A stretch of DNA of 36,623 bases from Basidiobolus meristosporus CBS 931.73 (GCA_002104905.1 MCFE01000781.1:1-36623), one strand, 5' to 3'; shown: positions 8,352-28,103, counted from the stretch's first letter. Numbers and translations are program-made. The notes: a model not told the origin generated them from the sequence alone.

Positions 8352-8578
8352 TTCTTCACCTAATTCCGCGTTCTTTCCTTTTGATGGAACCTCTACTACA
8401 GGTTTCTATGCCTTGTCTCTAGAAGCATCATGTTGACGCTTCTTCTTCCGCACTTTGACTGTCCTGACCAGAGGGCTTAGATTGACTGAGTCCCATTGGC
8501 CTCCTGGCAAGGGACTCTGTCTTTTGATGCCTTCTGCTCTTTTGTGTCCGGTATGGCTTCTTGTCCGTACTGTTTTTC

Positions 8579-9349
8579 ACATTTGTGAGCCCGGTGACCT
8601 ATTTCTCTACACACATAACACAGATACTGTTGTTGCAGTTGTTCCATCTTTTGGGTCAGGGCTTGTACCTGGGTCTTTAGATCTACAACAGCTTCCCAGA
8701 GTTTATCACTTTCTTTGGGGACTTCTTGGTCATTGTTGATTGAGAGTTCTTGGACCGTTTGCTGTAATTCCTCTAGCTCATGGTCTTTTGGGGAGGCAAT
8801 TTTTCCTTTCTTATGGGGGATCCCTGTCCTTCAATCATTTGTATCACTATAGGGTAGCCCCCATAGCAAGATGACCCCTTGCACTTGTTCAACCAGCTCT
8901 TGCAGCGTTTTACATCCCTGTTGTTCTTTGGATGCCCTATGTCTTATTTTGTCGTCTAAGCACATGATGTAATACCTCATGAGCTGTTGTTTGGTGATTT
9001 CATCATTCAAGAGACATAAAACTTGCTGGAGGAACAGTTCAGTGTAGGCTTCATAGCTCACACTGCTTTTCTTCCGTGAGGACAGTAGAAGGGCTTTGTA
9101 GTGGTACCCTTTGGCATATAGAAAGCATGTCTTGTAGGCTTCTTCTAGTGCATCACAGTTGTCTTTAACTGCATCTTCCAACCCATAATGCCATTGCCAT
9201 GCTGACCCTTCCATATGTCTTGCAAACTCCCTTACTTTCTTATTGTTGTCCCATCCTGCATCAACCGTAACTCTCTCAAACTTATCAAACCACTCAAGGG
9301 CTTTCTCTCTCTTTCCCTTGTATGTTTTTAGTTTGATTGTAGTAGTCAT
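8579..9349 (-). pseudogene. gag: Ty3/gypsy gag with CCHC zinc knuckle
   Basis: EWFDKFERV...GWD...MEGSAWQWH capsid-like ORF (8831-9349). Knuckle CYVCREIGHRAHKC at 8579-8620. Confidence 0.88.
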
Positions 9350-9764: not shown

Positions 9765-11093
9765 CCCTTGATCTTCTGCCTTTGATAGTCTCTGCTGTTG
9801 TTGAGTTACTTGGTTAGCATACCAATACTGTTCCAAAATTTATTTGCCTGTTTGAATCCAGGATAATGCTCATGGAGCAAGTCCAGTGCATTATGCTTGT
9901 CCTTGAGTTCTTGATGTTTACATGGTATACCAGCCTTGAGGTGATGGAATGCTAGACTTCAGACAGTCAAATGAATGTTAGCCCACTTTTCATTATGGCA
10001 CACAGTGGCTTCAGATATCTTCAATTTCTTTTGATATTTAGGCTTTGATATAATCACCACATTGTCTCCCTCCTATGCTGTGATAGGTTTTTCTCTGGGT
10101 TTTATATTTGGGTTGTTGTTCTGCTTCAAAGATTGTACAGTGTTTCTCTATTGTTACCTCCAGAAATGGCTGAATTCTTGGCTATGACATTGAGCTACTT
10201 GAGTTCCTTCATTGAAGATAAGATACTGCTTTCTCTACCTGGGTTATTGATTGCCCTTCATGTCTTATCTGCTCATCCTAGTTCTAGAATATTTCCTGAT
10301 TTCTTTGTGCCATCACATCTAATGTATCAGCATCTGCACCTAATTGCTTCATAAATGCTTTGGTACAAGCTGACAACATTCTTGCTAATATGGGTGATGG
10401 TGGTGTCATAGCAGCCACTTACTGGTCATCAACTGATGGTACTGCATTTGTTACACTCTCATCTGCCTGGGCACAACAGTCAGCTTGCAGCTCCACAGAG
10501 GTTCTCAATTGCCTACTTGACTGAGAGCCTGAGGAGTCTGCATTATTACCTTCAGTGGGCACAATGTCAACATTGCCTTTTTTGGATGTAGCCCCACTTA
10601 TTGCACTGAATGTCAAAGCAAGCAGTTGTCCAGCTGTTCTTTGGCTGCTGTCAGCTGTGAGGTTTGGTTGATAACCAGACAACTTTGCTCTATTTTAAAC
10701 CAAAGAGGAAATAGTGTTACTTATACATGGGTATGTGGTACCACAACTTCATTTATAATGCTTAATATAGCAGGTCAGCATTGAATCTTACATTCATGTA
10801 GTTGCAATGTCTCAAATACAAGACTGTCTTATATTTACATGAGCATTGGCCAAAAAGTGATACAATAGCATTATGTTGTTGAAGGTCAAATTGTTTGCCC
10901 CATGGACAAGACTACTTTGACTCAACACTGTAACAGAAGAGAAAAAAGTCCATGTGGCTATTGTAGTAAGCCTCTCAGCCATGAAGCACATAGACAGCAT
11001 AGGAAGTAGTACAAGGATCACGGCCAGTGTTTTGCCACAGAAGTCATATTTGACCATACATCAATTACTACTGTACCAACAATAATTTTTAAG

Positions 11094-12288
11094 TGAGGTA
11101 GTGTAAACATACCTCTTACAGACAGGTTTATCCATATAGCTATTATGATGATATTATCCATATTCTATCTTATCAGTATTGTCCCATTCTTCTTTGCCCA
11201 TAGTATTAGTATTATCCCCATATGATGTTACTCCTTATTAGTTATTGGCATTAGTTATCCCCAATGCTATTTAGCTTTGTGATCAGTATATGTATCTGCA
11301 TTAGGCAAGTACCCATATCAGAACCTGTGACACATGACCTAAATCTGTGTTACCATCCCTATCATTGCAATACCATATATGGCATCTCTATGCTACAAAG
11401 GTTTCAGACTACTGATCCCTGATTGGTTGAATGTGCTGTGCCTTTTAGAACCTTCAAGGACCTTCTTAGAGTATTTTTAGCTCATAGTGATGTCATCAAA
11501 ATTTCCACCAATGCCTGGAATCATCTAGAACCTTGTCATTACTAATCACTTGCAATCTGGAAGAGTATATAAGGGAAGTCAATCCCTCATCAATCAATCA
11601 TCCCTTCTGTCAGTAGCACTACTCCCTTATTGATTAGCAGTTGATCACTGCACCTGCCTTCAACAGTTGCACCTCAGACCAGCCATCAAGGAGCTTTTCA
11701 GGGTAGTGCACAGTGTGGGTTATTACTGACTGTACTTGGTGAGTGGGAGAGCTTGTAGGTCAAGTCAGTACCACTTGGTTCAGAATAGCTTCCAATAGAA
11801 GGTAGCAAGGTAATAAAGACTTCTGTTTATTTCGTCCAAATCTTGTTGTTCTTCCTGGTTCATATGGGTAGATATATATATCACTTGGGGGGGCTTAGAC
11901 AATAGACAATGTGTTATAAAATAGGGGTGTGAACACCTTCCTGTTATGGTAAGTGTTCTAACTAGATAAGGGCAGGGATAGGAGGGGAGGACACGTGGGG
12001 GAATCATAGGGAGGGTACTGGAGGACTTTGGGTAGGACTCTGGAGGGAACTCTTGGGAGAACTCTTGGGCGAAGAGTGGGTACTATATTGAGTACTCACA
12101 CACAGGACACACAGAGGTCTTTGGAGATGCTTTGAGCACCAAGGAAGCTAGAGAAGCAGGAGTTTTTACCATAGTAACATATTGGCAATGACACCAGCAG
12201 TTTAGACCCATAGGTTATTGCACCCATGAGACACCTCACACACCTTGAGTTGTGTAGCTTCTCCTAGGAGTACCTCTGCTCCAGCACA
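11094..12288 (+). mobile_element. Family B LTR copy, split by a family A solo LTR
   Basis: Colinear with 3484-4285 once 11714-12100 and one TSD copy are removed. TGAGGTAG...CAGCACA termini. No matching TSD (TAAG versus CTGG). Confidence 0.85.
11714..12100 (-). mobile_element. Solo LTR of family A
   Basis: Homologous to 2211-2584 (387 bp with a small internal duplication). 5-bp TSD CACAG (11709-11713, 12101-12105). Confidence 0.93.
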
Positions 12289-12552
12289 CTGGCCAGCTGA
12301 TACTTCTATATTGGCACCTGGCTGTCTTTGTAACCTTGCACAATCTGAGTCATGTGGGGTTATGATGCCTTTAGGCTCACCTCAGCCTTCTGAATATGGC
12401 ATGCAGAGTGATGGCTCTGATGAAAAAGGTGCACTGATGGATTGTCAGCCCATCTCTCCTATCAATAGTACCATGCATGAGCCTGGTCAAATCCTAATAT
12501 GCAATGAGACAGCACCAGTTGAAATAAGTGCCAAGACACTCTATGGAGCCAA

Positions 12553-13148
12553 GTGAGCCCAGTAATCCATCTACTGGTGAATGATGTAATGTTGTGGCTA
12601 GAGAAGTGGCACGTTTCCACTAATATCAGTAATGGGGGCTCTAGGGATTTACTACTACTTCTTGCAAAAGCATTCCAGGATGCAACTTGCTATGTTCATG
12701 GTACATGTAGACAACCATCATGCAGCTATCAACATATAACCCAGAGACTGTCCTCATTCAATCATGTGTTAACAGTTGCATGGCATTCACCTCCATGAAT
12801 GCCAACATTGCAAGGTGTCTAAATTGTCAAGAATCAGCTACCATTGAGGGAAAACATTGCTCACACTCTGGATATATTCTGGTAATACCTTGTTGAGAGA
12901 AGCTCATGCTGTCTGACAAATATTGCAAAGCTATAAAGTACCACACTCAGTATTGATCAAGCGCAAGCATATCTGATATATCTGATGGCAAACATTATCA
13001 GTAGATAAGAAGTAAGGGCTAGTTTGAAGGTATATATAACCATGCCTTTGCTTTAGCACTGGATGGATTCTCATAAGACAAGTACTCTACCAGCAAATCC
13101 TGCTGGCCACTGATTCTCATCAACCTGAATCTGATGCCCATCTTACAG
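12553..13148 (+). pseudogene. Degenerate CACTA/EnSpm (Transposase_21-like) transposase fragment
   Basis: Manual + strand translation gives LIQSCVNSCMAF...RCLNC...YILVIP, then SDISDGKHY...ALDGF...SCWPLILINLNL. This follows the C-x-N-x-C / C-x2-C / D-x-x-DG / L-x-x-DG / WP...N-L pattern of EnSpm transposases. Several stops. Confidence 0.75.
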
Positions 13149-15092: not shown

Positions 15093-15661
15093 TGCTGTGG
15101 GAGTCTTGGAGATATTGAATGTGATTAGGCAAACTGGTCAATTGCATACTTCTCACTTGATGATTTATTGAAAGTGAATGTAGTATGTATACTTTACATG
15201 GTTTTGGCAAAGCAGGTATGTAGAGTATGCTTGGGGAGGTCCTAAGAGAATGTGCACAAAGTCTGCAGCTGTCTGGATTGTACTGCAATTTCTGATGCTC
15301 TAGGTGCCTGATTTTGGTTGTAAAAATTTGTAATTTCACCTAAATACTCACATAACTTGGTGACTTAAATCATTACTAGATGATTTTTCAAAACCAGCCA
15401 AGTCTCTAGTTGGATTTACTTGGAATATTCTCACCAAGAACATAGACATCTAGAACATAAGGGCTCTCAAACTTGTCCAAACAGCCCTAAACTTTGCACA
15501 TGTGTTCTTGGAACCTTTCTAAACATAGTGTACATGGGTTTTGTTCCAAGACCATGTAAAAGTACTGCTACTACTTTTACATTCAATGAACAATTATGTG
15601 AAGGCCACATAATCTACTTGCTCTCCCAATCACTTCCAATATCCCCAAAACACTTACAATC
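15093..15661. repeat. Two old Ty1/copia LTR relics back to back (partial minus copy ~15093-15318, plus copy ~15316-15661)
   Basis: Both align with the 349-bp LTR at 32228-32576 (TTGTAAAAATTTGTAAT..., CCACATAATCTACTTG.TCTCCCAATCACTTCCAATATC). Boundaries are approximate. Confidence 0.75.
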
Positions 15662-18600
15662 TTTTTTGTAAAAATATGTTAGTAGATCTTAACAAGGAAT
15701 ATGGTCAGATTTTTCCAGACTTGAAGGCAATGATCAGAGTAACTGAGTTAGCTGAGTTTTCTGGTGTAATTAAACAACTAAAACACCTATTTCTTATGAG
15801 CACTCTGTGTCAGTTTTGGCATTTCTGGATGCCACATCTGTGATCCAAATTGTATCTATATTGCCTCAGGTACCAGCAATCAGAGTCCATACAAGTAGTC
15901 ATATATTTTATCCTGTCTGGCAGCAGATAGAAGTATTTTGAATAAAGAATCACCAGCGTTTGGCACAGGAGACTTGGACATACATAAAATAGCAACAAAG
16001 GCCCTTACACTAAATGTAAATACCTCCAAAGCTTCAGCAGTGATGTACTCATGGCCCTGACAAAAGAATTTAGAAAAGGCCAGCAGGGTACCATCATAAG
16101 ATCAGCTTAATTACAAGTCTCATTAAACATGCAACTCCCAATATCCCAGGTACTAGCTATTTAGTCTGAAAGTAGACATATTCTCCAGCAGGAGACTATG
16201 CCAACTAGCGTTCATACCAGATTTGGTAATCAGCTACTCATTACTTCCACCAAAAATTTGAAGAAAAGCACCAGCTGAATGCCAGCAAAATACCATCAGA
16301 ATATTGGCAGATTATCTGATGAGTTCCAAATTTGAGATTTTTCATAGGGATTATAGTCATGTAAGCAATGCGTTGCATGTGTTCCTTGGCCAGGATTGAC
16401 ACATTTGGGGATTCTGAGGACCCGAATAAATTCGGAAATTAGTGAGAAAGGCAACCCGATCCTTAATTGGGTTAACAACAGTACCTGTGCATGAAATTCT
16501 TGGGGATGATATATTGTGGCTGGCGCTTTACTCATCGCTGGTGTGAAATCCCCCAACGATGCATCATTAGGGGTGTTGAATGGGTAGCTGAGAGGCCACC
16601 ATATCATCAATGCGCTCGTTGTCGGAACGTTATATCGGCTAGTAAGGATTGTGGTATGCCACTTTACTTTGTCATCTTCCAACCCGCAGTGTGTAGACTT
16701 CGCCAAAACTGACCAGGGAAGCACAAGCAATAGCTCCTCAGCACCCGGTTCCAATGGTTGGCCGATTTCGGCTGGATTTGAGATGCCCTCAGCTCGGCTT
16801 CTCGACCGGAGATCAGCTTACGTTTGAGAATTGTTCTGCGCAGGTCGGATGGACCCGTTCACCGGCCGTTCATCCCGAGAAAGTGGAAGCTACAGCGATG
16901 ATAGAAATGCGGGGGTGCTCCACCCAGGCCTTTTCCCAAATGGGGACCTCTCAATGGATACGATTCTGATGTGTGTGGAGTACGCCACCACACACAGAGA
17001 CCCTTTCGGATAGACAGGGCCCCTTAGAGAATGCGCAACTCCAGCAAGTGGCCTGAGTTTCGGGTGATGGTAGACTTAGCCACATTTCGGGCCGACCTTT
17101 GCTGATAGGGTGGCTCCCGCAATGGTGATGATGGGATCCAACTCAGAAACGAGTACCAAGGTGGAGGAGGTTTTGGTCCCCCTTAAAGACTTTCACCCTC
17201 CTGATAGTCCTCCTGTTCGAAAAAGTGGTTCGATCACCAGCTTCATCCCGTTCATGCTGATCTACATCGTACGTGGGCGATGCAATTACACGACCTAGCT
17301 ACTTTGGGAGGAGGATACTGCGGTGACACCCATGTTCGGAGACACCATTTCATTCACCGAGTGATGAAATCCAAGCGCCATACTAAAACCCTGCATGTCG
17401 CAAATACGTGGGGGCGAGCTCTCCACTTGCGAGCCGAAAACTCGAAGTTGTTTTCCGATGTCGCGAACGCGAAAGGCTAGAGATGGAGTCAGTGGTTTAG
17501 ACAACCATCCCTCCTCCTGACCTCGCCGTCACAGATTGTTCTGGTAGTATTATTGATCTATTCCCCCGCATTTATGAGACACTAGGAACGCTAGGCACGA
17601 TAACTGATCTTCATTCGACCCCGATCCATCCTCCTTGACTGCTTGATCATGGATGAAGTGGATAGATCGAAGCTGTAGTAAAGGTGTGCCACCAAAAAGC
17701 CGGCACTCAAGGGGATCGCAGATTGACCGCCATGGAAATCCACCCCGTCTCCCTTGCAATCCAGGTGATGGCTGCATTTGGAAGCGAACTGTTGCGGATA
17801 ATTAATGCGCATATCTCTAGATATCCCAAGCCAGCTAGGTCCGGTTTCTAGTTGGTATTAACAGGCGCGTCTCATAATAATCAACCGGATGGCTGAAGGT
17901 TGCCTCATCTCCCCCCCCCACTTGACTACCAAATTCAACCAATATTTGCTTAACAGGATAGAAGGATATGGAAGCAGGTCAGGTGGCAGTCAGGCAACTA
18001 AGGTTTGAACAGACTTCCCAGAGCGAAACCGGGAAATTTTCAGATTTCGGGCTGGTGTAGGCGAAGAAGAAAGGCGCCTCCCATCGCTGTTGAACTCCCC
18101 CACTCCACTCGGCTTGATCCAGAATGGTCGCTCCACTGGTGCACCCAGTTCGGCCATCTATCTTGACAATACAATTTGGTACATGATATCAGTGTGGAAC
18201 CGGAAGCTGGCTGGAAATCACCACAAGCATACAACCAGTAACCACGCGCATACTGCTCAATTCACTACTCAGTGAATCAGGCATCATGCGGTGGGATAGA
18301 TCTAATGAATCCATCAGTGCCAACAACTTCACCACTTGTAGCATGTCATGCCATCTTGGGATGTATTGACGCTTGGCCAAGGCCCGTGATATCACCTGAA
18401 CGAGGTTCATCCACCCTCATTTGGAAATCATCGAAATCTCCAGGGAGCGACGATTTTTCCAAAGGAAAATGCCGCGATTCAGGTGATATCGGGAATTTCC
18501 ATTGGAACAGGAGGGTGTTGATTGGCGAGCGGAATGGAAATTTCTGACCCGCGCAATTTGACTCGATATGGGAGAACCTTCTGGCTTAAGGTAAATGAGC

Positions 18601-18814
18601 CAGGACGCAAAATGGTCAGGGTGATGTAATCCACCCCTTACGTCATGTCAAGCCATCGTCTTTGGGTGCCCACGGTAGCCTATACGAGGTGAATTGAAGA
18701 AGGCCACGCTGGGCCAGACCTCAAAGCAACGCACCTTCCGCCGGAGAGAAAGTATAAATTGGGTGGGTCGGATGGAGTGCCCCACAAAAGACAATCCATC
18801 CCAACGCAATCCAA

Positions 18815-19027
18815 ATGACCCTTCCTGAGAAAGTCACCTCCGAACAGAACACCCACGACCGCCATGTGTCCCGCAACGGGGCGCCGGTCGATCCGAAATC
18901 CATGAAGAAGCAAGGAGCCGGCCGAGGAAACTGGGGTACCTACGAGGAGGACATCGAAGAGGCCCTTCACGAACAGGCCCCCACCAGCCACCAGGCCCCC
19001 ACGAAAATCAACGTCGCTCCCCAGTGA
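18815..19027 (+). CDS. Small STF2/TMA10-like (HABP4/PAI-RBP1-type motif) hydrophilic protein, 70 aa
   Basis: DRHVSRNG...DPKSMKKQGAGRGNWGTYEEDIEE matches the KKxGxGxGNWG..D motif of fungal STF2/TMA10. TATAAA lies ~60 bp upstream. Confidence 0.8.
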   Translation: MTLPEKVTSEQNTHDRHVSRNGAPVDPKSMKKQGAGRGNWGTYEEDIEEALHEQAPTSHQAPTKINVAPQ

Positions 19028-19898
19028 ATCACTGTTCCTCACTGCAGTAGATCCATGCATTTCATTTTTCCACCTTCCTGTACATCCAGATCATAGCACA
19101 ACTACCAATAAATCCACTTCATGAAATCCATCCCACCACCGAAATCCCCATCGGCATTCGATCTGGAAGCCACGCACTGATAATGCTGGTGAGACTTGGC
19201 ATCTCCTCCACCGATGCAGATGCAGGAGAGCTCACAACATCTGCCTTGTGCCATTCAATTAATTTACCGCGGTCTCAGCCTTGGCTGTGAATCGAAATTG
19301 GTTAGCCTGGTTGAAGAGCAGGTTGGCTTCCGCTTTACCCAAAGTGCGTTCATGCTAGAAGCGACTAGCATGAGTCCACCCTTGCACAAAATAAATGTAG
19401 CTCACCGTGAATGGAGAAACCGACAGCATCTGGGTGTGAATGGCGCATTTGGATACTAGGCTAACGGCCTGGTGTAACCCGGGAAGCAGGATATTTCCAG
19501 TATCCCTTGTTCACCAAGGGACGCCTATAGCTTTTGGCTACCTGATAATGGATATGGGTGTGACATTACCAGAGGGAATTCTCGTCGGTCGTGAGTGGTG
19601 GTTCGCCTGGTGGGTGACACCAAGGCACTTTTCCGGTGACACGGAGTCAATGTTACACCGTCTATCTATATCGCGCATGAGACTTGAACTTTATTGCCTC
19701 CTCGGTTTGGCGGGCGAGGATGCAGAAATTTGCCAAATTGGAGATGGTGCATGGCAGAACCGGTTGGCTTGGGGGAGTGGTGGGTAGGTTTAAAAGGGCG
19801 GCCACCGTGGGGACTCCAACCAGCATCGCATTCCTTAATATCTCCTTATCTCTTGAAGGGATTTCCACTCACCCATCTCTATTCGCCTCATTTCGACA

Positions 19899-20709
19899 AT
19901 GATCGGTATCAAATTAGTTAGCACCGCCATCGCTGCTCTTACAGTCTTGGTCACTGTTTCCGACGCTCATTCCTGGGTGGATTGCATGGACTGGAGGTTC
20001 AAGAATCCATCCAAGCCAAGCTTCGATGACGACGCTGGCAGTTGCTACGGCTTCGCTCGCCGCTTCCCCGCCTCCATGAAGGGTGGCAAATACACCGGCA
20101 AGTACGGATTTGGTACCCTGGACTCCACTGGCGCTAGCCGTCACTACAAGCAAAATGAGCAGAGTCCTGGTAAGTTCGACATTCCATAGGAATCCAGATC
20201 ATAGGGTCGGAGTGATCCTGGCTGCAAGACCAACCAACTAAATTTGATCTTCGAATGCAGACACCTGGCCCGCCTGTTCCACCGGCAAACGTATCGGTGG
20301 TGATGAGGAGGTTGGTACTGACGAGACTCGTGCCAACCCTGTTTCCAAGGCCTACGGCGGAACCTGGGGCCCCATGACAGTCGCCAAGGCTGGACAACAG
20401 TTGTGTGTCCGCTGGCCCGCCAAGAACCACAAGAACGAGCCCAACAACATCGTCTACATCAACATGCCCCCCAGCCCCACTGCCAAGGATCCCACTCAAA
20501 AGCAATTGAACGGCTGGAACATCGCCAAGCTTCAATACGGCAACTGCTTCTCCGGTGGTTCTGACAAGGCTCGTTGTGGTGGCTGCTTCACCATTCCTAA
20601 GGACCGCAAACCTGGAGACTACCTCATCCAATGGAGATGGATGCTCAAGGGCGACGATGGCAAGCCAGAATGGTACACCTCCTGTTCCGACGTCCAAGTC
20701 ACCAAATAA
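19899..20709 (+). CDS. Secreted His-brace (LPMO-like) protein, paralogue 1, short form, 239 aa; exons 19899-20169 and 20261-20709
   Basis: Signal peptide ...VTVSDA|HSWVDC. Phase-1 GTAAGT...GCAG intron (20170-20260) whose removal gives a continuous frame. WPAKNH, GDYLIQWRW, EWYTSCSDV; 8 Cys in the mature protein. The gene model is solid, the function is inferred. Confidence 0.88.
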
Positions 20710-20864
20710 TTCGTGTCGGCGACAATCGCATTATTCAGATTTTGCTATCACATGACCACCCGAATGGGGATTCTATCGATGTTTAATTCATATTCATAAT
20801 AAACCATTGTTCCAGATTTCTATGTTACATGTCTACAGATGTAGTCTAATTCTATTTACGCTCA

Positions 20865-21730
20865 TTATCTGATTGTGATTCGTCGGAGGCGGTTAACTGA
20901 CCTCCGTTGTTTAGATGTGGATTTTTTGGTGGCATTGGCGGCCTTTTCGTTGGTTAAGCGAATGTCCGAGCAGGAGGTGTACCATTCAGCTGCATTATTG
21001 GAGCCATTCAACTTCCATCTCCACTGGATCAAGTAGTCCCCAGGGGCACGGTCCTCTGGAATGGTGAAGCATCCACCGCAGCGAGCCTTGTCGGAACCTC
21101 CCGAGAAGCAGTTACCATAGTCAAGCTTGGCGATGGTCCATTGGTTGAGCTGACGCTGCGTAGGGTCCTTGCTCATCGGGGTGGGTGGCATGTTGATGTA
21201 TACAATATTGTTGGGCTCGTCCTTGTGGTTCTTTGCGGGCCAGCGGACACACAGCTGCTGTCCAGGCTTGGCTACAGTCATGGGCCCCCACTTTCCTTGG
21301 CCGTAAGCGCTGTCAACAGGGCTAGCCAGTGTCTCATCCGACCCGACCTCTTCACCTTCACCACCCTTGTAAGCTTTGCCAGTGGAGCATGCAGGCCAGT
21401 CATCTATACGTTAACCAAGTTAGAAACCTAGTGCTACACGACAGATCATCTAGATATCCTACCTGAGTTCTTGATGGATTGTTTATAGTGACGGCTGGGG
21501 TTAACAGAGTCGAGGGAACCAAATGGATACTTCGCCGTCGCTTTATTGTTACTATAGTTGACTGGGAAACGGCGAGCGTAGCCAGCACAAGAGCCAGCGT
21601 TATCATCAAAACTCTGCTTGTTCCCGTTGAACTTCCAGTCCATGCAATCCACCCAAGAATGCCCTACACTCGAGTTGGTCATGGATAAAGCCAGGACCAA
21701 GGAGGTGAAAAAGAACTGCTTGTGGAACAT
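20865..21730 (-). CDS. Secreted His-brace (LPMO-like) protein, paralogue 2, 268 aa, short basic tail; exons 21730-21463 and 21403-20865
   Basis: ...NSSVG|HSWVDC. 59-nt GTAGG...TAG intron (21462-21404) at the same position and phase. Same motifs, with tail KKSTSKQRRSVNRLRRITIR. Confidence 0.88.
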
Positions 21731-22114
21731 GAAGTATAACGGATAACGGATGGGAGTTCGGATGGTATGTCGCCCTGGATGTCATCAGGTATTTATCACT
21801 TCGGGCAGGGCTATTCAGAGCTGCTCGATGCATTGTTCGAACCGGTCCAAATGCTTTGAGACGAAACACCAGCCCGGTCTCCGACCAATTATCCATTATT
21901 GCACAATGGCGGGCCCACCACCAAGTGATCGAAAATCGAGGGGCCTGACGAGAACACTATATATCCGTTTATTTACTCTAAGGAAGCACTGCTTTATCCT
22001 TTTTTTTCGGAAACCCATGGTTTTTAACAAATCGATATGAACAATGGAACGATCAACTTTGAATACAATGAATGATTTTCGCCCCGTAGAATCGATCTCC
22101 TGGCTGTACGTGGT

Positions 22115-23310
22115 TTAGATCATGCTACGTTTGGCGGTGTATTTGATATTACGGCGAAGGTTGTAGACTGGATAGCTCCCAGACAACGAGCGTCTACCAT
22201 GGTGTCTACGGCCACGCTTATGGTTGTCATCTTCGTCTCGTCTTCGTCTTCGTCTTCATCATCACCTTCGTCTTGGTCCTCATCGTCATTGTTATCACCA
22301 CCCTTGTTTTCTTCATCGTCATCGCCCTCATCATCATCATCTTCATCATCACCATTGTTGGTTGGTGCTGGCTTCTTGTAGTTCGGTGGGTTTGGTGTGG
22401 GCTTGCCTACATTGCCTTTGCCGTTCTTCGAGGTGGTGGTGACTTTGCCACCGCTCTCGGTGCTGCTTGGAGCTGGGTCTACGGTGGCGGTAGGGGCAAC
22501 TCCACCCTTACCGTTTCCGATGCGAACATCTGAGCATGAGGTGTACCACTCGGGGACATTGTCTTCGCCGTTCAACTTCCATCTCCACTGGATCAAGTAG
22601 TCCCCAGGGGCACGGTCTGGAACGGTGAAGCATCCACCACAGCGAGCCTTGTCGGACCCACCAGAGAAGCAGTTGCCATAGTCAAGCTTGGCGATGGTCC
22701 ATTGGTTGAGCTGACGCTGCGTAGGGTCCTTGCTCATCGGGGTGGGTGGCATGTTGATGTATACAACATTGTCGGGCTCGTCCTTGTGGTTCTTTGCGGG
22801 CCAGCGGACACACAGCTGCTGTCCAGGCTTGGCTACAGTCATGGGTCCCCACTTTCCTTGGCCATAAGCGCTGTCAACAGGGCTAGCCAGTGTCTCATCC
22901 GACCCGACCTCTTCACCTTCACCGCCTTTGTATGTTTTGCCAGTGGAGCAAGCAGGCCAGTCATCTAATATCAGCAGGATCAAAAAATCGATCAGTACTT
23001 GCAAAAATGGGACCTCACAGCATATCAACTGATCCTTACCTGGATTCTTTTCTGATTGCTTGTAGTGACGGTTTGGATCAGCACTATCCAAGGACCCGAA
23101 AGCATATCTAGGACTGACTTGGTCTCCGTTGTACTTGACGGGGTAGCGACGAGCATACCCAGCACAATAGCCAGCATTGTCGTCGAAGCTTTGCTTACCG
23201 CCATTGAATCTCCAGTCCATACAGTCAACCCAGGAATGGGCATCACTGAAGGAGGGCATCACCATCAAGGTGGCGGCGACGGAAGCAAGGAAAAACTTGG
23301 TTTGGACCAT
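22115..23310 (-). CDS. Secreted His-brace (LPMO-like) protein, paralogue 3, long form with acidic tail and an apparent 1-nt frameshift near 22238; exons 23310-23040 and 22964-22115
   Basis: ...PSFSDA|HSWVDC. 75-nt GTAAGG...TAG intron (23039-22965). As given, the ORF ends at 22120. Restoring one base in the GAAGAC repeat gives a tail homologous to paralogue 4, ending at TAA 22117-22115. Confidence 0.85.
22226..22357 (-). repeat. Asp/Glu-rich coding low-complexity tract (about 40 codons)
   Basis: GAT/GAC/GAA-rich repeat encoding DDEDDDDEGDDDEENKGGDNNDDEDQDEGDDEDEDEDE. Limits are approximate. Confidence 0.85.
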
Positions 23311-23371
23311 GTTCGTTCAAGGGATAATAAATGGACGGCTTCGTAAGATAGGCTAACTCGATAAGGAACGG

Positions 23372-23386
23372 GGTTGACCAGCGACC
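23372..23386 (-). promoter_or_regulatory. Candidate cis-element GGTCGCTGGTCAACC upstream of paralogue 3
   Basis: An identical 15-mer lies at 24369-24383 upstream of paralogue 4, at a similar distance from the ATG, with diverged flanks. Confidence 0.4.
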
Positions 23387-23441
23387 GCTTTGCAACTTGT
23401 CAAGTGTTGAATGATAAATTATTAAGGATGCTAGGCTAGTA

Positions 23442-23447
23442 TTTATA
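23442..23447 (-). promoter_or_regulatory. Putative TATA box of paralogue 3
   Basis: TATAAA on the minus strand ~130 bp upstream of the ATG. Confidence 0.4.
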
Positions 23448-24306
23448 TCCACTAACCAATCTCACTTTGGTAACCCCAGGCGAGAATTTAAAATCAGTCT
23501 TTGTTGTCCCGTGCCATTAGATGGTTCTCAAGATGGATCCCACCAAACCCACAAAAAAGTACGGCCTATTCCCAAAGTTGGCTATCTAGACCCACCTCTT
23601 TCAAGTCTTTGTATGACCCCACATTACACCAGTTTGTGGTGTCGCTAGAATGGGTAGTTGCATCAGTTAATTCATCTCCAGCAACCCTTGAACCTGTGGT
23701 CAATGACTTCATCTAATAACCAAGAGTTACACGAGGCAAGACCCTTTAAAGCCCAGTGGCTACACCACGTTATCAATCCAAAGAGAGTTGGAATTTTAAG
23801 GATCAGAAACCGGCGAATAATGGGGCCAGTGGAGTACCGGAAATTCCATCTTCATTTACAATAAGGAGGATTTTGGATCGGTCTTAAAATCATTAAATTT
23901 GTGCCATGGTCAGGCCAATGGCTATGAAGGCCTCGAATTCGTGTGGCACTCTAGTATGAAGTCGGTAGTCTCATGAGATTGTTGGTGGTTGGCGAATTTC
24001 ACTCATTTCATCGGATCGGTTAAGCTTAGAGTAGATATGGGATCCTTGGTGAGATGACTTTTGCTTTTTCCAGAGGTTTCAGTGGATTTGCCTGTATGCA
24101 TGGTGCATGATAACAACCCTAAATCCGATGATTTTCTCCACCACAAAAGCAAGACTTTTCATGAAGGCCGGGGTTTTCCCTGTCATTAATCTTGGACGCC
24201 CTCTACTAATTAATGCTTGCTACTGGTGTTACCTCTCGATCAAATTGCTGGTCCTGCGAGTAACGAAACCGTGAAAGACCCCGAACAGTGCGTAACACAG
24301 AAGGGG

Positions 24307-24313
24307 TATAAAA
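24307..24313 (+). promoter_or_regulatory. Putative TATA box of paralogue 4
   Basis: TATAAAA ~135 bp upstream of the ATG, mirroring paralogue 3. Confidence 0.45.
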
Positions 24314-24368
24314 CCAACGATCTTCCCACTCTGGAATGACATTCAACACAACCAACTTCAAAGGATAA

Positions 24369-24383
24369 GGTCGCTGGTCAACC
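24369..24383 (+). promoter_or_regulatory. Candidate cis-element GGTCGCTGGTCAACC upstream of paralogue 4
   Basis: Identical to the reverse complement of 23372-23386. Confidence 0.4.
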
Positions 24384-24447
24384 ACTTTGCATCCTTCATT
24401 ACATTTCTTTTTGAATACTAGCGTATACCCTCAGCTTTACCGTAACC

Positions 24448-25764
24448 ATGGTCTACTCCAAACTCTTCCTCGCTTCCGTGGCCGCTACCATGATGATGAT
24501 GCCCTCCTTCAGTGATGCCCATTCCTGGGTTGACTGTATGGACTGGAGATTCAATGGCGGTAAGCAAAGCTTCGACGACAATGCTGGCTATTGTGCTGGG
24601 TATGCTCGTCGCTACCCCGTCAAGTACAACGGAGACCAAGTCAGTCCTAGATATGCTTTCGGGTCCTTGGATAGTGCTGATCCAAACCGTCACTACAAGC
24701 AATCAGAAAAGAATCCAGGTAAGGATCAGTTGAAATGTTGTGAGGTCCCATTTTTGCAAGTACTGATCGATTTTTTGATCCTGCTGATATTAGATGACTG
24801 GCCTGCTTGCTCCACTGGTAAAACATACAAAGGCGGTGAAGGTGAAGAGGTCGGGTCGGATGAGACACTGGCTAGCCCTGTTGACAGCGCTTATGGCCAA
24901 GGAAAGTGGGGACCCATGACTGTAGCCAAGCCTGGACAGCAGCTGTGTGTCCGCTGGCCCGCCAAGAACCACAAGGACGAGCCCGACAATGTTGTATACA
25001 TCAATATGCCACCCACCCCGATGAGCAAGGACCCTACGCAGCGTCAGCTCAACCAATGGACCATCGCCAAGCTTGACTATGGCAACTGCTTCTCTGGTGG
25101 GTCCGACAAGGCTCGCTGCGGTGGATGCTTCACCGTTCCAGACCGTGCCCCTGGGGACTACTTGATCCAGTGGAGATGGAAGTTGAACGGCGAAGACAAT
25201 GTCCCCGAGTGGTACACCTCATGCTCAGATGTTCGCATCGGAAACGGTAAGGGTGGAGTTGCCCCTACCGCCACCGTAGACCCAGCTCCAAGCAGCACCG
25301 AGAGCGGTGGCAAAGTCACCACCACCTCGAAGAACGGCAAAGGCAATGTAGGCAAGCCCACACCAAACCCACCGAACTACAAGAAGCCAGCACCAACCAA
25401 CAATGGTGATGATGAAGATGATGATGACGATGAAGACAACGATGAGGAAGACGATGAAGACAACGATGAAGACGACGATGAAGACAACGATGAGGAAGAC
25501 GATGAAGACAACGATGAAGATGACGATGAGGACGACGATGATGAAGATGACGATGAGGACGACGATGATGAAGATGACGATGAGGACGACGATGAGGACA
25601 ACGATGAGGACGATGATGAGGACGACGATGAAGACGACGATGAGGATGAAGACGATCATCGTCGCCATGGCCGTCGTGGCCACCATCACCGTCATGACAG
25701 ATCTAAGCGCTCCTACCCCATCTACAACCTCCGTCGTAACATCAAGCGTACCATCAATGCGTAA
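24448..25764 (+). CDS. Secreted His-brace (LPMO-like) protein, paralogue 4, long form, 413 aa; exons 24448-24718 and 24794-25764
   Basis: ...PSFSDA|HSWVDC. 75-nt GTAAGG...TAG intron (24719-24793). The domain is followed by a P/T/S/K linker, an 83-residue D/E/N tract and a His/Arg-rich end. Confidence 0.9.
   Translation: MVYSKLFLASVAATMMMMPSFSDAHSWVDCMDWRFNGGKQSFDDNAGYCAGYARRYPVKYNGDQVSPRYAFGSLDSADPNRHYKQSEKNPGKDQLKCCEVPFLQVLIDFLILLILDDWPACSTGKTYKGGEGEEVGSDETLASPVDSAYGQGKWGPMTVAKPGQQLCVRWPAKNHKDEPDNVVYINMPPTPMSKDPTQRQLNQWTIAKLDYGNCFSGGSDKARCGGCFTVPDRAPGDYLIQWRWKLNGEDNVPEWYTSCSDVRIGNGKGGVAPTATVDPAPSSTESGGKVTTTSKNGKGNVGKPTPNPPNYKKPAPTNNGDDEDDDDDEDNDEEDDEDNDEDDDEDNDEEDDEDNDEDDDEDDDDEDDDEDDDDEDDDEDDDEDNDEDDDEDDDEDDDEDEDDHRRHGRRGHHHRHDRSKRSYPIYNLRRNIKRTINA
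25408..25656 (+). repeat. Coding tandem repeat of 83 consecutive Asp/Glu/Asn codons
   Basis: Imperfect units such as GATGAAGACAACGATGAGGAAGAC and GACGATGAGGAC. Confidence 0.92.
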
Positions 25765-26270
25765 GTCCCGAAAGCCGAATATGTAGCGCCAAATTTTGTA
25801 TCATTTTCTGTCGGCTCAACGGCCACCCAATGTCCCATAAATAAATTCCCTCGAAACCAAACCTAGAACCTGTGGAAGCCCAAATCGCCCGGGGTTTCGT
25901 GGCCTCCCGAAACGCCAATGAGCTGGATCCTTGCCACACTGACACCAAACAAATTGGATCCGTCATTAATGGGCTTAAGCTTGAATTGCCGATGGTGGCA
26001 CGAAATTAATTCCATCTCCCTTGCGATACCGGAGTGCATGCTGGCCAAGACACCTCCGTCGAAGTCGGGCGATATTTCCAAGCCGGGAAAATTCCCCCTC
26101 GTGACGGGAGGGTGGAAATGAGGATGCATCCGTCAAGAATAAACAGGAGCCAGTTTCGGGCAAAATGAAGTGGGTTTATTCCAAAATTAAATTAGATTAA
26201 ATTCAGGATCATTCCTAAATGCTATTCCCTTGTCGGGTAGTCGTAGGGTGGTCAAGGTAAGGTGGTGCGC

Positions 26271-27046
26271 TTATTTCTTGACGCGAACATCGGAGCAGGA
26301 GGTGTACCATTCTGACTTGCCGTCGTCGCCCTTGAGCATCCATCTCCATTGGATGAGGTAGTCTCCGGGCTTACGGTTCTTGGGGACGGTGAAGCAGCCA
26401 CCGCAACGAGCCTTGTCAGAACCACCGGAGAAGCAGTTGCCGTATTGAAGCTTGGCGATGTTCCAGCCGTTCAATTGCTTTTGAGTGGGATCCTTGGAGG
26501 TGGGGCTGGGGGGCATGTTGATGTAGACGATGTTGTTGGGCTCGTTCTTGTGGTTCTTGGCGGGCCAGCGGACACACAACTGTTGTCCAGCCTTGACCTC
26601 AGTCATGGGACCCCATTTACCACCATAGGCTTTGGTGACAGGACTAGCACGAGTCTCGTCAGTACCAACCTCCTCATCACCACCGCGGCGTTTTCCGGTA
26701 GAGCAGGCCGGCCAGCTATCTATAAGGCAATTGTTAGCCAGGGGACTTCGAGGAGAGTCCACCGTTATTGGAGCTTACCGGGGCTTTTCTCGTTTTGCTT
26801 GTAGTGACGGCTAGCGCCAGTGGAATCGAGAGAACCGAAGGCGTATTGGCCAACGTATTGGCCACCCTTCTGCTTCACTGGGAAGCGACGGGCAAATCCC
26901 TTGCACTCTCCGGCATTATCGTCGAAGCTTTTCTTGGATCCCTTGAATCTCCAATCCATGCAGTCCACCCAAGAGTGAGCGTCGGCCAGGGCGACGAACA
27001 CGAGGAGGGCAGCCAGAGCGATGGTTAGCACACGAGTGTTGATCAT
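26271..27046 (-). CDS. Secreted His-brace (LPMO-like) protein, paralogue 5, short form, 238 aa; exons 27046-26779 and 26719-26271
   Basis: MINTRVLTIALAALLVFVALADA|HSWVDC. 59-nt GTAAG...GCTAAC...TAG intron (26778-26720). Closest to paralogue 1. Confidence 0.88.
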
Positions 27047-27800
27047 TCCAAATGAGTAAGGAAGTAAGAAGTGGTTCTCGTCAAGAGAATAAGTGAGGTG
27101 AGAGGAAAATGAATGCCCACCCTCCACGACGGAGGGCCATCTTTTATGCTGGTCAGTCAGTCATCTTGCACCCATCGCTTCCAGGCGCCAAATGGTTTTT
27201 CCTAATGGTGACACGACAATCAAGGTGGATCATTTCGTGAGGAGCTAGATGGACGGGGCTATTCCCGCTCAATTACTGTTGTGTAAAGTGAGGCGAGTGC
27301 ACAAGACCTCCGGATTGGTTTCCCCTTGCGAGAAGCCCATCTAAATCGCCACATTTCGTGTCACCCTGAACGTACATGAATAAATTGTGGGCGTGCAGGA
27401 ATCATCTAATGGCGTTGCGGTTGGCATGGATTTTCGGATGATTTTTGGATCTTCCGCAAATCAAACCGCGCTTACTGAAATTAGTGCATCGGCCTCCCCC
27501 TGGGGCAAGGTTAGGGTAGAGGCGGGGTCAGAGATCACCCCATATCACCCCCCCGTGATGTCATGGAGTTTCGTGACATGTTCCTAGTCGTCATTGAATT
27601 AAAAAAACTTGCTTGCATCAACGATGACGCCCAGGTGAGAGGTGAGCAGAGGGCGCGGCTTACGTATGGAGAGTCTTGGCCAGTTAACTGGTTGCTGAAT
27701 GAGCCATTTCTAACAGTCATCCTCGTCAAGGATTCTGTATTTAAGCTTCACAATCACCACCACCAACTCCATCATCCTCTTCAGCAACAACAACAACAAC

Positions 27801-28103
27801 ATGGATAACGTCAAGAAAGCCTACGATCTTTACAACGCAACCGGCGATAGGGACAACGACGGTATTCCCAATGCGATCGACACCAAGAACAACAACACCG
27901 GTATCTGGAAGGATCAGGATAATGATGGTATCCCTGATATAATCGATTCTACTGACAGTAACACCCAAGGCGCCATGGGGGACAGAGACCACGATGGCAT
28001 CCCCAATGCAGTGGACTTCCAGGACAATCAGCAAAATTCTGGACAAGGTGGGCTTGGTGGGGTCCTGAACAAGGCAAAGGATCTACTTGGAAAGCGTACA
28101 TAA
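27801..28103 (+). CDS. 100-aa protein with three thrombospondin type-3-like DxDxDGIP[ND]xxD repeats
   Basis: DRDNDGIPNAID, DQDNDGIPDIID, DRDHDGIPNAVD. (CAA)5 lies directly before the ATG. No signal peptide. C-terminus GGLGGVLNKAKDLLGKRT. Confidence 0.8.
   Translation: MDNVKKAYDLYNATGDRDNDGIPNAIDTKNNNTGIWKDQDNDGIPDIIDSTDSNTQGAMGDRDHDGIPNAVDFQDNQQNSGQGGLGGVLNKAKDLLGKRT

Follow-up and report, generated by a model that had tools for sequence, protein, structure and literature searches.

We analysed scaffold MCFE01000781.1 of Basidiobolus meristosporus CBS 931.73 (assembly GCA_002104905.1), a stretch of 36,623 bp that is referred to here as the window. Positions 19899-27046 carry five intact two-exon genes, in the order g1(+), g2(-), g3(-), g4(+), g5(-), whose paralogous products we propose to be secreted proteins with the fold of lytic polysaccharide monooxygenases (LPMOs). 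Each gene is interrupted once, by an intron of 59-91 nt whose donor is GTAAG or GTAGG and whose acceptor is AG. An earlier note on this DNA had described one intron position common to all five paralogues, and the spliced gene models bore this out: every intron is in phase 1 and falls in the same codon (...SP/D.WPAC), directly 5' of the sequence (D/T/S)WPACSTG.

The g1 gene (19899-20709, + strand) encodes a product of 239 amino acids (aa). Its exon 1 (19899..20169) encodes a 23-aa leader ending in VSDA and then HSWVDC, with the codon for the first histidine after the leader (His1) at 19968-19970. The intron (20170..20260; 91 nt, phase 1) runs from GTAAGT to CAG, and exon 2 (20261..20709) encodes WPACSTG, QQLCVRWPAKNH, GDYLIQWRW and EWYTSCSDV before the stop codon. 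On the opposite strand, g2 (21730-20865) consists of exon 1 (21463..21730), in which the leader MFHKQFFFTSLVLALSMTNSSVG stands ahead of HSW (His1 codon 21659-21661), a 59-nt phase-1 intron with a GTAGG donor (21404..21462) and exon 2 (20865..21403), which encodes a C-terminal tail that is short and basic. As deposited, the g2 model (252 aa) begins at an internal Met (21682) and so is without the leader and signal peptide; the in-frame ATG at 21730 gives g2 16 more residues and with them a normal hydrophobic leader ahead of HSW. The g3 gene (23310-22120, - strand) has a leader ending in PSFSDA before HSW in exon 1 (23040..23310; His1 codon 23236-23238) and a 75-nt phase-1 intron (22965..23039), which is in frame, so that the raw open reading frame (ORF) continues across it. 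Its exon 2 (22120..22964) encodes the core domain followed by a long Thr/Pro/Gly linker and a long acidic tail (D/E). The g4 gene (24448-25764, + strand) has the same PSFSDA leader end before HSW in exon 1 (24448..24718; His1 codon 24520-24522) and likewise a 75-nt phase-1 intron (24719..24793); exon 2 (24794..25764) encodes a core whose protein sequence equals that of g3 and, after it, a long Thr/Pro/Gly linker and a long tract of D, E and N that leads into a His/Arg-rich block. The repetitive DNA behind this acidic D/E/N tract (25360-25691) comprises some 19 overlapping copies of a tandem unit of 12 nt, sometimes 9 nt, and the g3 tail (22199-22442) is shorter than that of g4 and different from it. 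The deposited g4 model (344 aa) stops at 25643 and must remove part of the tail via a second intron. Last, g5 (27046-26271, - strand) comprises exon 1 (26779..27046), with a leader ending in VALADA before HSW (His1 codon 26975-26977), a 59-nt phase-1 intron (26720..26778) and exon 2 (26271..26719); the spliced g5 product is identical to the deposited K493DRAFT_412264 (P0002, 238 aa). In g1 and g5 the chain stops 4-5 residues past the last strand, with no hydrophobic C-terminus of the glycosylphosphatidylinositol (GPI) type, and the tails of g2, g3 and g4 are not hydrophobic either, being acidic or basic.

The five proteins share the features that had been read from the raw sequence. Their leaders are hydrophobic, 23-24 residues long, with small residues at -3 and -1, and they end before His1 in SDA (g1, g3 and g4), SVG (g2) or ADA (g5), with HSWVDC next in 5/5, as the earlier note had reported. 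From the (-3,-1) small-residue rule and the same pattern across the family, described below, we infer that the leader is cleaved directly ahead of His1. The further sequences said to be kept throughout, QQLCVRWPAKNH, GDYLIQWRW and EWYTSCSD[VI], recur in each of the five proteins, as does RHYKQ, and we counted eight Cys in each core, the number claimed for the mature chains; the four disulfides predicted from them fit an extracellular protein. Pairwise comparison of the five cores gave identities of 71-87% for most pairs and 100% for g3 and g4. Synonymous divergence (dS, Nei-Gojobori) was 0.6-2.4 in most pairs and 0.03 for g3/g4, and the ratio of non-synonymous to synonymous divergence (dN/dS) was 0.09-0.19 in the nine informative pairs, the g3/g4 core having no non-synonymous change. 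These low ratios indicate that all five genes are maintained by selection and that only the g3/g4 duplication is recent, and with core identities of 71-100% they show that the shared features are not due to chance. The recent pair lies head to head in an inverted duplication (22238..25520) with arms at 22238-23311 and 24447-25520, each 1074 nt long and 95% complementary to one another.

To examine the fold, which the earlier note had taken to be that of an LPMO, we built an AlphaFold2 (AF2) model of g5 (P0002) on 47 homologues. The model had a mean predicted local distance difference test score of 87.6 and a predicted template modelling score of 0.84, and its core is an immunoglobulin (Ig)/fibronectin-III-like beta-sandwich. 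A Foldseek search against the PDB, the check that had been suggested for this reading, returned LPMOs as the top matches. Among the matches listed, 46 of 50 were LPMOs (AA9 and AA10) or LPMO-type chitin-binding proteins (E down to 7e-6), the exceptions being PmoD and SoxYZ. We scored structures with VIA-align in two comparisons, the second of them exhaustive (48,161 PDB chains) and independent of Foldseek. In the first the best Z-scores were 11.9 for AA10, 11.0 for AA15, 10.2 for AA11 (root-mean-square deviation (rmsd) 2.8 Å) and 10.1 for AA9. The exhaustive comparison gave 11.4 for AA10, 10.8 for AA15, 10.4 for AA13, 10.2 for AA11 and 10.1 for AA9, followed at lower values by X325 (8.2), AA16 (7.5) and AA14 (7.2). 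Ranks 1-25 of that comparison were all LPMO or LPMO-like (Z 6.8-11.4), with the LPMO kinship of rank 25 (8s71, 'Oxidoreductase B') unconfirmed, and no unrelated Ig-like fold scored above Z 6.6. For LPMO chains the alignment almost always opened, on the side of the model, at His24, the residue that would become His1, and on the side of the matched chain at residue 1 or its first residue. Identity over the structural alignments was 9-17%, and no single LPMO family stood out. On this model the fold is clearly that of an LPMO, with g5 about equally distant from all structurally known LPMO families.

The five proteins belong to a much larger set of relatives, which we call the HSW family. Word-indexed and exhaustive hidden Markov model (HMM) searches collected, at E<=1e-3, 460 clusters (50% identity), 210 of which reach E<=1e-10. 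Members come from B. meristosporus, B. ranarum and very many Mortierellomycota, from dictyostelids (Acytostelium, Heterostelium), oomycetes (Saprolegnia diclina, Pythium insidiosum) and the ichthyosporean Chromosphaera perkinsii, and from MMETSP marine protists and many metagenomes. All 48 of the wider-family members that we aligned have a short N-terminal leader that stops directly before His-Ser (HSW or HSF; HSE in one); almost all of these leaders are hydrophobic, and a few are truncated. A domain alignment of 63 sequences had a mean column identity of 28% and only 12 invariant positions, which in mature g5 numbering are H1, S2, C6, C25, C72, N122, H123, G185, W191, W193, Y205 and C208. Of these, H1 is g5 His24, Y205 is the Tyr of EWY (g5 Tyr228) and H123 is the His of WPAKNH (g5 His146), which is located in the loop after strand 136-142 of the model and is invariant in 63/63 sequences. 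The second motif that had been called invariant, RHYKQ, kept that standing among the five paralogues and lost it in the wider family, where its His is invariant only in the Basidiobolus/Mortierella clade. We therefore ruled out this His as a brace partner. It lies in the part of the precursor from ~60 to ~125, which has little regular secondary structure in the AF2 model and varies more across the family than any other part. H1, H123 and Y205, the residues that a histidine brace with an axial Tyr requires, are exactly those invariants of this old family that are neither Cys nor structural, which is evidence for a copper site, and we consider this argument from sequence conservation strong but indirect. 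Some distant members carry additional domains: the HSW domain stands N-terminal to a GH5 cellulase in P0164, and other fusions are to a CBM18 chitin-binding module (P0207) and to CBM1. These fusions support work on carbohydrates, as far as domain company can, without fixing the substrate. Separately, a C-terminal WW domain was found in 5/48 distant members (P0140, P0157, P0148 and P0182 among them; E down to 5e-12), where it follows a long low-complexity linker; next to a secreted LPMO-like domain such a partner is unusual.

One of the candidate ligands could also be placed on a solved LPMO by sequence. A profile of the wider family, searched against PDB sequences, matched the AA11 chains 4mah, 9exj and 7p3u at E 1.2e-4 to 2e-4, in an alignment limited to profile positions 151-190 of 191 (~40 residues), within which G-x-Y-T-L-x-W-x-W and E-x-Y-x-x-C align column for column. 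Counted in 4mah, the Glu-x-Tyr of the family falls on Glu138-Met-Tyr140 of A. oryzae AA11 (AoAA11). In AoAA11 the axial position is reported to be taken by Tyr140 (Hemsworth et al. 2014). The axial Tyr that the earlier note had proposed is thus supported, being invariant in the family and aligned with Tyr140.

Considering these results, we propose with moderate confidence that the five paralogues are secreted, disulfide-rich proteins with cores of ~215 residues and an LPMO-type fold that would oxidize polysaccharide by means of a histidine-brace copper site. Cleavage of the signal peptide would expose His as residue 1, and the amino group and Nδ1 of His1, with the His of WPAKNH (mature His123), would form the copper histidine brace. 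The EWY Tyr (mature Tyr205) would be axial and Glu203 would lie in the second sphere, as in AA11. Following reduction of the copper to Cu(I), H2O2 or O2 may drive hydrogen abstraction at C1 or C4 and so break the polysaccharide chain. The long clade-specific insertion that contains RHYKQ, which comes after the first strands and ahead of the His strand, may shape part of the substrate face, by analogy to the L2 region of other LPMOs, and g3 and g4 would add disordered acidic tails. Chitin or beta-glucan is our guess at the substrate. The analysis establishes the gene structure, purifying selection, the fold and the invariance of the three candidate ligands across the family, and it supports the LPMO interpretation as far as computation allows; from there on, the cleavage site, copper binding and oxidative activity are inferred.

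Several observations weigh against this proposal. No RNA run contains this DNA, and support for expression is fragmentary and comes from the RNA assembly of a relative, in which high-depth contigs lie over the conserved core with differences mostly at third codon positions. Parts of the wider family do not keep the Glu of E-x-Y, which had been proposed as a second-sphere residue and does fall on Glu138. Searched by itself, the His loop (a profile of 53 columns) matched no LPMO, and by sequence WPAKNH is without a counterpart in solved LPMOs. The GH5, CBM18 and CBM1 fusions hint at differing substrates, and each was found in one member only. Finally, X325, AA16 and AA14 have the LPMO fold with no activity on polysaccharide or with disputed activity, a precedent from which it follows that fold and brace do not prove catalysis.

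This precedent also underlies the alternative that survives best, in which the HSW proteins bind copper through an LPMO fold without cleaving polysaccharide and serve in copper acquisition or cell-wall copper handling, as X325/Bim1-like proteins, or in H2O2 production or the assistance of oxidases, as AA16-like proteins. X325 (LaX325 6ibh, Z 8.2) and AA16 (7ze9, Z 7.5) have the same fold, and X325/Bim1-like proteins are also alike in secretion and in the N-terminal His. Metal might be bound by the His/Arg block and by the extended acidic tails that g3 and g4 carry, and the wider family spans organisms of very different diets. However, the catalytic families match the model at Z 10-11.9, with AA9, AA10, AA11, AA13 and AA15 all above X325 and AA16, and the axial Tyr with E-x-Y is as in catalytic AA11 and AA9. 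X325 uses an Asp ligand, whereas the Tyr of the HSW family is conserved; g1 and g5 are without the hydrophobic GPI-type C-terminus; and the fusions to GH5, CBM1 and CBM18 suggest polysaccharide work. We therefore regard a non-cleaving copper protein as unlikely, though credible, and retain oxidative cleavage of polysaccharide as the preferred function.

A different alternative concerns classification only: the family could be a divergent branch that CAZy or dbCAN already files under AA11, or as LPMO_10/AA10-like. AA11 is the sole solved family with a significant sequence match, many HSW members carry the automatic UniProt name 'Chitin-binding type-4 domain-containing protein', whose source domain is AA10/LPMO_10, and one ESM Atlas cluster is named 'Lytic polysaccharide monooxygenase'. 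The LPMO_10 model (PF03067) is, we believe, the Pfam model that detects AA11. dbCAN-based surveys reported AA11 to be enriched in the secretomes of Zoopagomycota and Mortierellomycotina (PMC9391592; PMC9866270), and part of that enrichment could be HSW genes. In structure, AoAA11 (4mah/4mai) and A. fumigatus AfAA11B (9exj) share the beta-sandwich (Z 10.2, rmsd 2.8 over 137 residues) and the N-terminal His with the g5 model, and the sequence likeness takes in the last two strands including E-x-Y-x-x-C-A. It is confined, however, to about 40 positions of the 191 in the profile, and the N-terminal and His-loop regions match no AA11. The family differs from AA11 in its N-terminus, HSW(V/A)DC, in its Cys pattern (8 Cys) and in a long insertion of about 60 residues ahead of the His strand, and where it has the candidate second His in WPAKNH, AA11 chain 7p3u has ATHGGGSCQ in that region, a stretch that we take to hold the second copper His of AA11. 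LPMO_10 matched no window protein, at E<=1 or at E<=10, and matched only 3/47 and 2/48 family members at E<=0.01. A profile search of 5.8 billion proteins (E<=10) gave family members only, of which 0/101 carry LPMO_10, and the Z-score to AA11 was no higher than to AA10, AA15, AA13 or AA9. That the family is merely such a branch is, on this evidence, distinctly improbable.

No Pfam family covers the whole domain of the window proteins, and the N-terminal and middle parts of the wider profile matched no solved LPMO in the PDB sequence searches. When the whole set of PDB sequences was searched with profiles at E<=10, no chain of AA13, AA14, AA15 or AA16 came up; likeness to these four was seen in the fold only, at 9-16% identity. 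The narrow-family profile gave only marginal AA11 matches (E 0.1-0.2), and we set aside as spurious its asparaginase matches, which lie on PAK(R/N)H; the read-through g4 ORF gave mostly low-complexity matches to its acidic tail and one weak AA9 match (E 0.15). AA9 (PF03443) scored 20.2 bits against g1 exon 2, 18.5 against g5 exon 2 and 17.7 against full g5, below the gathering score of 27.8, with g5 residues 127-237 on profile positions 54-172. The fold is like that of AA9 (Z up to 10.1), but structural identity is 12-17% and the HSW family has Glu at the second-sphere position, where AA9 has Gln (Q-x-Y). AA10 and AA15 provide the best structural matches (ScLPMO10C 4oy7, Z 11.9; AsLPMO10B 7okr, 11.4; TdAA15A 5msz, 10.8-11.0), but at identities of 9-17%, and the candidate axial residue is Tyr, that of AA10 being typically Phe. 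The commonest Pfam match was DUF7492 (PF24320), an uncharacterised and mostly ascomycete family, which was found in 31/47 and 23/48 members. AlphaFold DB clusters of that name match the model with TM-scores of 0.56-0.63, but only the last strands of the profile are matched by the HSW family: the matches span about 60-80 of 265 profile positions, within 176-258. DUF7492 scored 18.2-20.7 bits for g1 and g5, against a cut-off of 27, and 27.6 bits for the deposited g4 product P0087, in which no single stretch passed. We considered AA18 as well and dropped it, AA18 being CelOCE, whose fold we take to be unrelated to the LPMO-type fold described here. The CelOCE family is the newest LPMO-labelled CAZy family (Santos et al. 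2025). Together, these results agree with the earlier note in that the Pfam and PDB-sequence searches gave no strong full-length match to AA9, AA10, AA11, AA13-16 or X325. By the tests run the family is none of these, while resembling them in fold and candidate ligands, and the only recognisable likeness in sequence is to AA11, AA9 and DUF7492, in each case over the final two strands.

A single relative, P0299, reached the AA9 gathering score (28.1 vs 27.8 bits), and phmmer with P0299 again aligned only the AA11 C-terminus. Judged by their sequences, P0299 and P0300 may form a bridge between the HSW family and AA9. Both are metagenomic, start with HSMMQC and have WYARNH in place of WPAKNH, and P0299 also carries a precomputed PF27624.

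We consider very improbable a metal-free secreted binding protein or effector that retains only the LPMO-like sandwich, as Magnaporthe NIS1 does: NIS1 (8xgl) matches the model at Z 7.4 and Basidiobolus is animal-associated with expanded secreted families, but that match is much weaker than those to catalytic LPMOs, and the invariance of His1, His123 and Tyr205 across very distant eukaryotes would be difficult to account for if there were no metal site.

The HSW family is old, widespread in eukaryotes and, by the tests run, separate from every characterised AA family, and on the modelled fold it is probably a new LPMO-type family. It is not categorically new, its LPMO likeness having already been hinted at by the automatic naming in UniProt and the ESM Atlas. 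Searches of the literature, the PDB and Pfam found no characterised member, solved structure or Pfam model for it and no publication describing it, and we found no literature on DUF7492. More tentatively, and short of an expectation, the HSW proteins may constitute an unclassified, eukaryote-wide family of true LPMOs with a new substrate specificity that could arise from the clade-specific insertion. If so, the family would have the signature HSW-x-x-C ... WPAKNH ... W-x-W ... Y-x-x-C and would branch as deeply as AA9, AA10, AA11, AA13 and AA15 do from each other, and a new CAZy AA family would be warranted.

The genome contains a second cluster of these genes on MCFE01000007.1 (220638-241427), with genes at 8563-8778, 10001-10790, 11694-12854 and 15363-16334: a small HABP4_PAI-RBP1-like gene and then the three HSW genes K493DRAFT_332704, 332705 and 332706 (239, 362 and 304 aa). 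The same HABP4-like gene lies directly upstream of g1 (about 18645-19027). Given this shared neighbour, the two loci appear to have arisen by duplication of a segment or of the whole genome, later than the tandem amplification. Around the cluster in the window, G+C content is 49-53% across 17000-28000 (45-48% in the g3-g4 spacer, 23-25 kb), and the rest of the scaffold is mostly at 36-45%. An ORF adjoining the cluster (27801-28103, + strand) encodes repeated D-x-D-x-DG-IP-(N/D)-x-(I/V)-D units (DRDNDGIPNAIDT, DQDNDGIPDIIDS, DRDHDGIPNAVDF), and these units are similar to the calcium-binding type-3 repeats of thrombospondin.

The fungus Basidiobolus lives in association with the gut and occasionally causes disease in animals and humans, and Mortierella species are abundant in soil and degrade chitin. 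To our knowledge, every new LPMO family so far (AA11, AA13, AA14, AA15, AA16 and AA17) has opened a new substrate or biological role, among them starch, xylan-coated cellulose, the remodelling of arthropod chitin and pectin in plant infection. The HSW family, amplified in Basidiobolus to five copies at the g1-g5 locus and three at the paralogous locus, counts hundreds of members, from lineages whose oxidative carbohydrate chemistry has received little study, and is of interest to specialists in LPMOs and in early-diverging fungi.

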